A DNA stretch of 64,000 nt from Tubulanus polymorphus (lineage: Eukaryota; Animalia; Nemertea), in assembly GCF_964204645.1 (NCBI RefSeq), contig NC_134031.1:5022001-5086000 (forward strand). The letters are read 5' to 3'. The position numbers and the translations under genes were made by a program. Shown here piece by piece: positions 19,401 through 25,400 of the stretch (the first letter of the stretch is position 1; the number at the start of each line of letters is the position of its first letter). Under the pieces are notes generated by a model that was not told where the DNA came from, did not search any database, and saw only the letters and a list, made by a program, of their open reading frames with translations.

Positions 19401-22400
19401 ATGATTAACAATTTTGATTTTTTGCAATGCATTTTTATATCATTTTATTTTTTACGTACATTATTACGTATCATATAGAGATAAAAGCATCCTTTTTTTC
19501 TATTACCTGAGCAAAGTTCAAAAAGAACAACTGATCGTTGGTGAGATGTTCCAAGCCGGGTAATCGCGACTCCTCTATTCCGTTCCTGGCTGTTTTCACC
19601 CAATCCCGATAAGCCTAAACATGTATATAGCATGATTATAAATACGGCAAAAAATCATTCCACTACTCTTTTTGGCAGAAATGTTTTTTTTTCTCATCGA
19701 GATTCCAATATCATTTTCTGGTCATCGAGTTTTATTCATTGTTTTGAATATTTTATTGATAACTCATTGAGGCCAGTTTAGCAGAAGGAGCCGGGAATTC
19801 GCCTACCTGGTAAGCCTGTTTTAAGCCGCCATTATCGGCGATATTTTCTCCCTGTGTTTGAATACCATTAAGCTGCAAAAGATGTCATTTGATCAGAATT
19901 TCTAGATTTTTTAGATATTAAAATGTATCGCAATCAAAATCGTCGACCTATAAGTGACTGCGGACTATTTGAAAAGTTCGTTGAGGTTAATACATTTAAG
20001 ACGTTTTCAAGGGCTAGGACCTCAAACTCTGTATTCGCATGTAATGCAAAGCCCGGGGAAATTAGGCGAAAATAATAAAATAGATATAATATCTGAATTG
20101 TATATTCTGGGTCGCACTTACATTCATATTAATAGACGGAACCGTGTAATTACTGTACTGGTCTATGATACACTGGGCTCTCGTCTTGAAGTTCCCGATT
20201 GCACTTTCGGTCCACCACTGTTGCAGGTTTCCGTTCTTGTCGAATTGACGACCTGTCGACAACAAAAATATGGTACATATGAACAATAAGGTACGGGTAC
20301 ATAGCCGATTAAATTGAAGGTTCTAGTATGATACGAATGAAATCCATTGTAGTAAAAACGATGTGCACGTTTTCTAATTACATCATCCTGACCCATGAGC
20401 TTGCAATCATTCAGAAATAAACAAAGCGGCGCCCAGGCAGCTAAAGCTAGGGCATATTTTCCTATCAAAGAAATTAGTCCTAAACCAGTGAGTTTGGTAC
20501 ATCTAGAGCCGACGTAGAACTATTTTGATCAGACTCATTTCGCAAATTAGATGTGTTACTTTTTTGGTGGAAACAACTCGCGTTCTGGGGATATACGACA
20601 TTACAGTTTTAACCAGAGGATTAAGCCACTATTAGTCTATTCCGCAAAATGAAGTTAAAACTGTTCTGTAAAACTGGCACCCGTTTCACAGGACAAGTTT
20701 AGGTTTCATTACATTAACTCATACATTATATAATATATAGTATAATATATAATGTATGAGTTAACTTTAGTTAGTTTGAGTTTAACGCAGAAAGCAAAAG
20801 TGGAAACTGGTATTCTAAAACCCAGAGCATTCTTGGATTTATCCTACATCCCCAGACTACGTAAGAATTGTGCATTCTGATTACAAGCAGACGTTATAAA
20901 TCATTATAGACGATTGCTTCTTTTTCTACTATAGGTTTATGCAAGCTATTTAGCGGCACTACCGTGGAGACGGGACGAGGCCGAAAAATGAAACATACTA
21001 GAAAATGTTCACGTCTGAATAAGGAAATTGTTGCGATACGCAATAAGTTGAAGAAAAAAAGGATGTGAAGAAATGCACCTGGTAGAATTGCATAGTGATA
21101 CATCTGAATTGTTAAAATCGAATGAGTGATAGAATATGATTAACATGTTATTAATTCGTGGAATGAGGGCCGTTCTGTGGTGATAACATGTTTCGTGACG
21201 AACGACAGCTATAGAAGAATATGGGTGGTAAAGCGTTGAAAATGATAGCATAAAGTATCTAACAGAATAGCTGACTAGCGAAAGCAGCGTTATTGATAAG
21301 GGGGTTCTTTATACGTAGAGATCGAAGTAAGAAATGGTTTCTCTAGTCACATCAGGCATAATGCCGAAAGCAATACGGCAACGGCGAGTCGTGTGAGACG
21401 AATGAACCGCCATTATTTTACGGGGTACATGAAAGGCAAACATTTCATCTATGGAATAAGTATATCTACGTGAATAAGAGCGATCGCCCAACGCGAACGA
21501 GGCACGTGGATAGACGACATGATAGCGCGCACGCGCGTTAGGAACACGGCGGTTCGAGCGGGACAGAAAAAAAACATGCACAGAAAATAGAAGGGCTACC
21601 TCGGTCATCAAACCCATGGGTAATCTCGTGCCCAATCACCACACCAATACCACCGAAACTAAGAGACCTACACAATAATAGTAGAAAGATAAATGCGTTT
21701 AAAATAACGTCCGGTATAAACATGCTATTTCTTTGGCAAATAATGAAATCAAATCAAACGGACATAATGTGAGGGAGTGTCGTTTACAAGTTCGATCACA
21801 GCTGTGCGTTGGGGAGTTTCGCATTCGAATTTCAACACAAAGTTCTGGGCCTAGATTCGCTGGCGTAGTTGTACACGTGTTGCACCGGTTAAAACCTCTT
21901 TTTTAACGAAAAATTCACGGGTGAAGTTTAACAAATCTTTGGCCGCGATTCACCAGAATTATTTCCGATATATATGTTTGAATGTCGCAGACCGTTTTGG
22001 TCGCTTTGTAAACTAGGGGTCCAGGGACACCATGCCCACTTCCAAATGCTCAACAATCTAACAATTTCAATATTCAACGCCCCCTGGTGACCATATACAG
22101 AATCCAATGACCTTGAAACTCACCACAATCATAGAACATGTCAGCAGCTACAATTTTGTAATTGATTGTGATAACAAAATATGCCTCGTTACCACTTTAA
22201 TATGGAAATACTAAGTTATTCTACTATTCAACGCCCCCTGGTGACCATATTCAAAACCCAATGACCTTGAAACTCACCATAATCATAGAACATGTCACGA
22301 CCTATAACTTTGTAATTGATCATGGTAACAAAATATGCCTAGGTACCAATATAATAAGGAAATACTAAGTTATTCTACGATTCAACGCCCCCTGGTGACC

Positions 22401-25400
22401 ATATAAAATAACTAATGGCCTTAAAACTTGCCACAATCATAGATGATGTCATGAGCTACAACTTTGCAATTGATTGTGGTTACAAAATATGCATTGATAC
22501 GAAAATAATATAGAAATACTAAGATATTGCATTATTCAACGCCCCCTGGTGGCCATATACAAAAACCAATGACCTTGAAACTCACCACAATCATAGAACA
22601 CGTTATGAGCTACCACTTTTTAAATGATTGTGGTAACAAAATACGCTTAGGTATCAATATTATGTGGAAAAACTTTTTCCCACTTACGAATGAGTACTGC
22701 TGACACCAAGATGGCCGCAAATTGCGTCATAATTGGCTGATGAAAAATACCTGTCTCAGGTATAAAACATCCCTTTCCAAAGAATACCCATCACAAATTG
22801 CAATGAGAAATGATAAACCAGTAGGAAGCTACAGGACTCAGAATTTGGGCCAAAATTAACATTTTTGGGCACTAAAAAGGTCATAGGACGGCCATCTTGA
22901 GTCCGATCGACCCAATTTTTGTAATGCTGATGGGCCCTGGGGGAATTCACATATATCCGAAAGATCAAGGTAATTGATCAAAGCGTCTTCAAAATTTCCC
23001 TCAAAAAGTTCAAAAATGTGTAAAAAGTGCTGATTTTGGCGAACAACAATGGCTGCCAGTCAGCCATCTTGAATCTGACAGGGCCAGTTTTTGGGCTGAA
23101 GATGTGTCTAGGGTAGATACATGTGTAACCCAAATATCAAGACATAACCTTGAAGCGTCTTCAAAACTTCCCAAAATAACTGGATTCCGTCTACGGACGG
23201 ACGAACGGACGGACGGACGACGGACGAAAAGTGAACGCAATAGCCCGCTGGGACTAAAGTCCCAAGTGGGCTAAAAATACGCAAGTGACCTGCAGTGAAG
23301 TGACCCAAATGTGCATGATGGTAAAACACATTCTATTCCAATTGATACTTAATTAAAAAGCCGAAACTTTCTCTCGAAAGCAAATGTCTTCGCTCCGATA
23401 AGAATTCAGGGTGCAGCCTCACGAAAAAAGATTAACTCTTAAATCGTATTAAGATAAACAACTGAATCATTGAAGAAATAAAATCGGTTTATGAGGTTTT
23501 TAAACCTTTTTTGAAACGTGGTCCTGCCAACTAATTGGTCTTAGCCATTACAAGAATTTGAATCTCGTGAAAAAAAATATACGTGAAAGGAAAGAAAGTG
23601 ATATTTTCATCAAAGTTTAACATATCCACGGTATTGACGCATCGAAGCCCCGAAAATGACCAAGTTGCTATCATCGCTTAAGGAGCTCCCGAAAGTGACA
23701 CGACTCAGTTCTAGAGCCGTTATTTTCGGCCACATTTCTGCTGATGACTTAAAATATAGTAATGAAATAAAGAATATATACATTAATTTTTGCGATTTTG
23801 AAGAACTAACTGTACAATCATCATAGATGATATGATATAGGCCGTGAAACGTCGTTCGCGCACTGTTCACTAACGATCTGAAAATCTACTCGATGATTGG
23901 TTCGATCAGCGACGCCGGACCCGACAAGCGAGGGGTTATCGTTAAGCGAAGATCGAAAGATGTTCGTACGTATATTTACGGTGCGAAATTAGTTTAAATA
24001 AATGTTGTATACTGATGATAAAATCTCCACCCACCTTCATCGTCAAACCCGTGAGTGATTTCGTGACCTATAACCATCCCAATACCGCCATAGTTCATGG
24101 ACCTATACAAAGAGAATGCGGAGAACGTTGCAGATTTCGCAACTAATTATTATCATTATTATTATTGTTGTTGTTATTATTAGAATTATTATGATTATTA
24201 TTATTATCATCATAATTATTAGAAAGAAAGGTGATTTGAGTGCATGGAAATAATTTTTCTGCTGAGATTTGTTGTAAAATTGACTGCGGAGGGTTTCAGG
24301 GAATTATCACCTCATAGTGGATCACTTCACGTGCAGGTCTTCGTACTTCTAGACAAGGTTAAAATCGTTTCGCAAACATGTTCACTCTAACTGTTTTTTA
24401 CTCATTCTTGCACAAAACCAATGGGGGAAAATACGCGACAAAATAATCCCAATCGAAACCCTGATTCTGCACTTTCTTTTGTCGAGGCGGGCGTCAGGTA
24501 ATTACTATATCATGTACATCGATTATAGTTAAGAGACCGGAATGGTATGAAAAGTGTATGTCTTCAAGCCCTGACTGTCTCGCCGAATCTATATTATTCC
24601 AATCTTCACTTCCTACATGAATCATTTCTAGATATCGCTGTTTGGATGGGACGTCGTTACCCTATTTCAATCTATATTCATATTTGGTCAAAAATTCTTA
24701 ATTCGACTGAATATGGGTTTGTACGGTCTGGACTTTAAGTTAAAATGAAAAAGTGCTATAAATTAGGCATTGATGGTTTTTACGAGAATAACACTCGATA
24801 GAAAAAAAAACATTCTTTGTCATGTTTGCTTCATTAATGGCATACATTTACACAGGCTATAGGTAACCGAGGTGTCTGAGGTTGAATAGTTTCAATACTT
24901 ACTTTGGATATGTTTGACTATAAAATGGTGGCTGCAAAATTCCAGCGGGAAACACTGCAAAATAGATAAAATAATGCACCACTTACTAATGAATACATTA
25001 CGAAGTATCAGAATAACAGCAATGGGACAGCGTCCACTTACAAATACTGAAATTCTCAAAAATATGAAATTATTTTATCTGTAGATGAATATCGACATAT
25101 TTTTGCTTACATAATATCCCACTTTTTTAATTGAGAAAAAAGGAATCTTTTTTATTCTTGTAAAAAGAATATTGCATGATATCATGTAGTATTAAGAAAA
25201 ATCTAATAAAAGTTACCGGATACCGAACAAAGTTGCTTTGCGTCAACAGATATTTTCTTGCTTAAAGAGCAAGACTTTCAACCTTTCAAACGTCAAAAAC
25301 ATCCGTTTGACTTTTCATCAAACAAGTCTGACCTGTTTTTATTAATCAACACCGCTATTTCGACGCTTTGGAAAAAAGTTGTCAAAAAGATGTAAACACG

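Follow-up and report, generated by a model that had tools for sequence, protein, structure and literature searches.

The window analyzed here, 64,000 nucleotides of the genome of the nemertean Tubulanus polymorphus (NC_134031.1, here contig C7; the window is C7:5022001-5086000), holds on its minus strand a gene for a zinc peptidase of the M13 family in which the exon for the HExxH zinc-binding helix is present twice. The gene was found via a protein search with a single exon, followed by a search with the mollusc protein that it returned, and it is the RefSeq neprilysin-like (M13) gene of T. polymorphus, with isoforms X1-X5, to which the exon cores match at 100%. We refer to the two copies as exon A and exon B; they and the features around them, in positions of the window, are as follows.

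16420..52118, minus strand: the whole gene; its last exon ends ..KCQVW, with the stop codon at 16422-16420.
24954..24903, minus strand: constitutive upstream exon, ending in phase 2 (2 nt of a Lys codon), donor gtaagt; splices to A or B.
24102..24035, minus strand: exon A, the first copy, 68 nt, acceptor ...ttgtatag, donor gtgggt; GMV type, ending ..FDDE.
21668..24034, minus strand: intron separating the copies, 2367 nt; holds a very high-copy repeat at ~21883-23410.
21667..21600, minus strand: exon B, the second copy, 68 nt, acceptor ...ttgtgtag, donor gtagcc; GVV type, ending ..FDDR.
20252..20122, minus strand: constitutive downstream exon (GRQFDK..), 131 nt; accepts from A or B.

Pfam hits to the N- and C-terminal M13 domains align along the minus strand from ~16.4 to 31.3 kb. 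Six hits to PF05649 (Peptidase_M13_N) lie in the gene, and both exons exceed the cut-off of PF01431 (Peptidase_M13), at 35.7 and 32.4 bits, with HEITH intact in each. The third zinc ligand motif (GENIADNGG, 19884-19756), the NAFY/FPAGILQ substrate-binding motifs and the C-terminal KCQVW-stop (CxxW) are present as well, and a hydrophobic stretch, read by eye, lies near residues 40-65 of the RefSeq product (P0191). Judged from its sequence, the gene is that of a typical type II membrane M13 zinc peptidase. It resembles NEP/MME and MMEL1 in domain order, in GENIADNGG and in the C-terminal CxVW, and exon A matches the NEP residues His583/Glu584/His587.

A first-pass annotation of the window had described two 68-nt exons of identical phase between the FPAGILQPP and GRQFDK exons, and all of its coordinates and flanks proved correct. 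Each exon consists of 22 whole codons with one extra base at either end (phase 1). The two are identical at 47 of 68 nucleotides and at 17 of 22 residues, HExxH and GFDD are intact in both, and the likeness is confined within the exon borders. At the protein level they differ at the middle residue of GMV versus GVV, at the residue after FDD (Glu in A, Arg in B) and at three positions preceding GGIG. Exon B has a good polypyrimidine tract and a weaker donor (gtagcc). The window contains no further M13-type HExxH site, and in a profile search this was the only M13 gene of the 268-Mb genome with two adjacent Peptidase_M13 hits over HExxH. The exons thus have the form of a mutually exclusive pair, being adjacent, homologous, equal in length and phase, and bordered by AG and GT.

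Since 68 is not a multiple of 3, inclusion of both exons or of neither shifts the frame and leads to an early stop. The first-pass annotation had predicted such frameshifts, and both can be read directly. RefSeq isoform X5 (609 aa) contains exon A and then exon B, and its protein continues from ..GFDDE through ten residues to a stop, these terminal ten residues being exon B shifted by one base. When the flanking exons are joined without A or B, the frame (read by script) runs into a stop in the downstream exon. Inclusion of A and B together truncates the enzyme ahead of the third zinc ligand. Because X5 joins A to B, the acceptor of exon B must be used and B is spliced in. The four full-length isoforms, X1-X4, all contain exon A.

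The pattern of substitution between the copies bears on whether exon B is a functional coding exon. Within codons, 15 of the 21 differences between A and B fall at third positions (binomial P = 4e-4), 12 of the 17 shared residues are encoded by different codons, and Nei-Gojobori estimates give a saturated pS of ~1.0 next to a pN of 0.126. The first-pass annotation had noted that most shared codons differ synonymously around an intact motif and had proposed an old duplication with selection on both copies; the counts agree with the former, and saturated synonymous sites beside conserved replacement sites, together with the intact pairs in other species described below, support the latter, namely that both copies have been under selection since an old duplication. 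In the A+B transcript the HExxH frame of exon B is not read, so that selection must act on mRNAs that contain B but not A. We also considered recent conversion of exon B from a paralogue and rejected it, as B is identical at no more than 46 of 68 nucleotides to any of the genome's nine other M13 HExxH sites.

One could argue that exon B is a decaying relic of the duplication, a pseudo-exon spliced in by occasional accident, since it is missing from the full-length annotated isoforms and its donor, gtagcc, is weak. A neutral copy at saturated pS, however, would have lost its frame, its motif or its splice sites, whereas B is without stop or indel and carries few replacement changes (pN 0.126), and there is no paralogue that could have refreshed it recently. 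We therefore regard decay as highly improbable.

The closest parallel to the Tubulanus pair is found in another nemertean, Lineus longissimus, a very distant relation within the phylum whose protein is 58% identical to that of Tubulanus. Its RefSeq isoforms X1 (XP_064642717.1) and X3 (XP_064642721.1), of 771 aa each, differ at four residues, all inside the 22-residue segment, with GMVI in one and GVVV in the other and Q versus E as the last residue. The Lineus locus contains two 68-nt exons with AG/GT borders, 1530 nt apart, with the Val copy first. The pair in Lineus is thus an annotated case of mutually exclusive use, as given by automated annotation. It involves the same gene, the same 68-nt pair and the same Met/Val contrast as in Tubulanus, with one isoform per exon, although the order is reversed: in Lineus the Val copy comes first and the second copy is the default, whereas in Tubulanus the Val copy comes second and the default is the first. 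The mutually exclusive use claimed by the first-pass annotation therefore stands in the Lineus annotation (X1 versus X3), while in Tubulanus only A-only and A+B forms are annotated.

Intact pairs are also present in two other phyla. In the orthologue of the chiton Liolophura sinensis, an unannotated first copy of 68 nt with AG/GT borders (locus L004, 36763-36830; GAV type, ending in Q) lies 3.5 kb upstream of the annotated GMV copy, which ends in R and is the one used by all three RefSeq isoforms. In the annelid Owenia fusiformis, no more than 55 nt of intron lie between the two copies (locus L017, 45933-46123), which are both of GMV type and end in E and R; its annotated proteins use the second. 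A single copy with short introns is found in Lingula, Crassostrea virginica (oyster), Mytilus trossulus (mussel) and Patella vulgata (limpet). The first-pass annotation had named lack of junction support for one exon, together with absence or decay of that exon in related species, as evidence that would count against the pair; on the second point, what we find is intact pairs in Lineus, Liolophura and Owenia and a single copy in four other species. No swap of the HExxH exon was seen in annotated isoforms of the Mytilus, Haliotis, Patella, Mercenaria, Pomacea, Dreissena, Liolophura, Owenia or Lingula orthologues, nor in the oyster product clusters. Clusters from Pecten and Magallana were rejected as orthologues, because they represent different M13 paralogues (GVV and GYV types).

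A comparison of the copies across these four species shows that their two variable features behave differently. The residue in the middle of the GMV/GVV motif is, in the first and second copy, M/V in Tubulanus, V/M in Lineus, A/M in Liolophura and M/M in Owenia. The last residue is E/R in Tubulanus, E/Q in Lineus, Q/R in Liolophura and E/R in Owenia, so that the first copy always ends the more acidic, and the second copy resembles the single-copy exon, which ends in R. Nucleotide identities among all copies lie between 47 and 55 of 68, with the copies within a species as diverged as those of different phyla. At this level of saturation a tree of the copies cannot group the first copies or the second copies together.

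These comparisons allow two histories of the pair. On one of them, the pairs of Tubulanus, Lineus, Liolophura and Owenia arose as independent duplications of the same exon and there was no pair in the lophotrochozoan ancestor, an alternative that concerns the origin only. Consistent with this are the single copies of Lingula, Crassostrea, Mytilus and Patella, the failure of the Met/Val/Ala state to track exon position, the inability of a tree to group copies that are all 47-55/68 identical, and the recurrence of tandem exon duplication in M13 genes of the Tubulanus genome. Against it, the first copy ends more acidic in all four species and the second is like the single-copy exon ending in R, and copies within a species have diverged as much as those of different phyla. 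We regard independent origins as possible, though rather less than probable. Because of the shared polarity of first and second copies, we favor a single old duplication followed by losses as the history that the sequences would suggest, without great confidence.

What the exchange of exons would do to the enzyme can be judged from vertebrate members of the family. Human neprilysin and exon A share 20 of the 21 residues 571-591, and the hydrophobic S1' subsite of NEP is lined by Met579 and Val580 (PMC11997989). The Met of exon A that is replaced by Val in exon B aligns with NEP Met579; MMEL1 likewise has GMV, and the vertebrate ECE-1 and ECE-2 have GVV where exon B has GVV. The first-pass annotation had called GMV NEP-like and GVV ECE-like and had placed M579 in the S1' pocket, in agreement with the NEP, MMEL1 and ECE sequences and with the published description of the subsite. 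Its further proposal, that the switch alters the size of S1' and the charge after FDD, holds for the residue changes (Met/Val and Glu/Arg), which are real; the effect on specificity is a prediction from them. With its smaller side chain, Val should make the S1' pocket larger and shift P1' preference and inhibitor binding. Among the Tubulanus paralogues the Met579 equivalent is the most variable residue of the segment, being V, T, F, S, A or L. It is the polarity of the Glu/Arg change after FDD that goes with exon position from one species to the next.

Exon B is not simply an ECE exon. As a whole it scores closer to NEP (30.8 bits) than to ECE-1 (29.2 bits), and it keeps HEITHGFDD where ECE has HELTHAFDD. 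In the ECE enzymes the Val is fixed in a separate paralogue, whereas in Tubulanus it is supplied by an alternative exon. The known ECE-1 isoforms arise from alternative exons that are N-terminal. The vertebrate NEP and MMEL1 genes are known with a single HExxH exon, and the splice variants known from them touch the N-terminus or secretion and not the catalytic helix; in the Tubulanus gene, unlike in these, the catalytic helix itself is alternative.

Taken together, we consider it likely that A and B are an old, frame-enforced tandem pair of mutually exclusive exons in this M13 gene and that switching between them retunes the residue in the S1' pocket together with the one that follows FDD. Several points weigh against this interpretation. 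A B-only transcript was not found among the RefSeq isoforms of the Tubulanus gene, which are A-only or A+B, and when the stop-free frame around B served as a protein query, every hit was an M13 fragment from an organism other than Tubulanus. Nonsense-mediated decay (NMD) of the A+B transcript is assumed, yet this transcript was abundant enough to be annotated. The S1' residue is, from the aligned copies, not tied to exon position, and the functional contrast would therefore be non-uniform across species. Finally, the four read runs on record come from one study and none is labelled RNA, and read placement gave depth only, as the tables of joints were filled by the intronic repeat at ~21883-23410.

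The depth itself differed between the runs. Read run X4 (not to be confused with isoform X4) gave a summed contig depth of ~25-55 on exons, including exon A (~50), of 0-5 on introns and none on exon B. If this run is RNA, which its depth bins resemble, A would be the major form; contigs drop minor variants, so that the missing depth on exon B proves little. Read runs X2 and X3 resemble DNA at low coverage, their contigs crossing both exons unspliced.

The same observations could be explained if exon B served in Tubulanus mainly as a poison exon, which is included after A, introduces a premature stop and lowers enzyme output, with the B-only protein not made. The only annotated transcript that holds B is indeed the truncated A+B form X5, a B-only product was found neither among the RefSeq isoforms nor by the protein search with the B frame, and exon B was without contig depth in the RNA-like read run X4. 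However, exon B is shifted out of frame in the A+B transcript and meets a stop after 10 codons, and a poison role would not explain why 17 of 22 residues, HExxH and GFDD among them, have been kept in a frame that is not translated while every synonymous site has changed. Moreover, Lineus isoform X3 carries the orthologous alternative exon by itself, and intact pairs persist across three phyla. We conclude that a poison function as the main role of B is unlikely, and that mutually exclusive use remains the better explanation of the pair.

If A and B are used in this way, every mRNA that yields enzyme would carry exactly one copy, A or B. Transcripts with both copies or with neither would meet the early stops read in X5 and in the joined flanks and would presumably be removed by NMD. 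Exon A would be the default, as it is in the material behind the annotation, and exon B, with its weaker donor, the regulated alternative. As both copies encode a complete zinc-binding helix, both products are predicted to be active; P1' preference and inhibitor sensitivity would change and the chemistry would not.

The arrangement agrees with frame- and NMD-enforced tandem exons of other invertebrate and vertebrate genes, which are likewise homologous neighbors that match in length and phase, with a length not divisible by 3, and whose double inclusion gives a premature stop. Other means of keeping exons exclusive fit less well. Incompatible spliceosomes (U2/U12) are not the cause, because all four splice sites are GT-AG, and the 2367 nt between the copies rule out steric hindrance in Tubulanus. 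Steric exclusion of the kind known from tropomyosin may apply to the Owenia pair, where the 55-nt intron alone may enforce exclusivity. Unlike in Dscam and 14-3-3, where RNA structures compete, we found no support for docking/selector RNA pairing at the Tubulanus pair, the inverted repeats in the three introns being short, AT-rich or inside the high-copy repeat, and no intronic block common to Tubulanus and Lineus or Liolophura. A species-specific RNA structure at the pair is possible. This leaves the reading-frame rule, backed by truncation or presumed decay, as the likely means of keeping the exons exclusive.

Several features of the introns around the pair were recorded in passing. The repeat at 21883-23410 reached a summed contig depth of 1e5-6e5 in a DNA run, compared with ~33 in its flanks, with hundreds of variant joints, and inside it are several units that resemble one another, roughly 130-190 nt long, all of which end ..GGTCACCAGGGGGCGTTGAAT... 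Directly upstream of exon B, the in-frame intron at 21668-21753 (minus strand) bears a weak likeness to upstream coding sequence that the gene divides between two exons (ungapped BLOSUM62 score of 9 versus a null of -28 +/- 11, a score reached by 83 of 63,908 windows). The likeness may be due to chance, or the stretch may be left over from a copy that at one time took in unspliced upstream sequence. An AAT/ATT-rich tract at 24139-24225 lies just upstream of the acceptor region of exon A, and read contigs break there. A second low-complexity run, a long (TA)n microsatellite, occupies 40970-41100 (~41 kb).

The HExxH exon is not the only segment of the gene present in tandem, and further alternatives lie at its 5' end.

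18350-18274 and 17388-17312, minus strand: second tandem pair, two 77-nt exons of the VWC..HSP..R segment; RefSeq uses the first only.
52118-52029 and 46929-46852, minus strand: alternative first coding exons, with differing cytoplasmic N-termini (isoform X2 versus X1/X4).

Isoform X3 has a third N-terminus, and isoform X4 skips two exons at ~29520-28916. The length of 77 nt is likewise not a multiple of 3, and in NEP the VWC..HSP..R segment carries Trp693 of the S1' pocket (PMC11997989). For the orthologous cluster, 4 variants are annotated in Lineus and 2 in Lingula. Because two active-site segments of one gene are duplicated, variants of both can be combined, and the HExxH pair together with the VWC..HSP..R pair would yield several active-site variants from one gene. 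More tentatively, and as something we would hold at a little under an even chance, the two may form an ancient combinatorial active-site system of two clusters that predates the split of annelids, molluscs and nemerteans and lets one locus span NEP-like to ECE-like specificity, a range that vertebrates cover by separate paralogues. The choice of exons might be coordinated between the clusters. Such a system would give Tubulanus 2 x 2 forms, and Lineus as many as 2 x 4.

Elsewhere on contig C7, a neighboring M13 paralogue has two hits to the first 44 positions of Peptidase_M13_N, ~1.1 kb apart (C7:5154229-5154360 and 5155397-5155522), which suggests another tandem exon pair. A locus at C7:671739-673031 (67x kb) gave near-identical scores and may duplicate this neighboring paralogue.

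No paper describing the pair came up in our literature searches, which combined neprilysin, ECE or metalloprotease with mutually exclusive exons. Its mechanism, tandem exons enforced by frame, is ordinary; its target, the catalytic zinc-binding helix of an M13 peptidase, is unusual. M13 peptidases switch off neuropeptides and peptide hormones, and the S1' pocket decides which peptides and inhibitors they accept. Automated annotation misses copies of the exon, namely the B-only form in Tubulanus and the first copy in both Liolophura and Owenia.

An alternative module for the catalytic helix has been kept intact in at least four lophotrochozoan lineages of three phyla. The pairs offer a natural experiment on how specificity would be tuned by a single position in the S1' wall, occupied by Met, Val or Ala, and by the residue that follows FDD, and they would be a case of alternative splicing doing the job that gene duplication does elsewhere in the M13 family. 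The duplicated exon probably allows a single gene to produce enzymes whose substrate pockets differ slightly.

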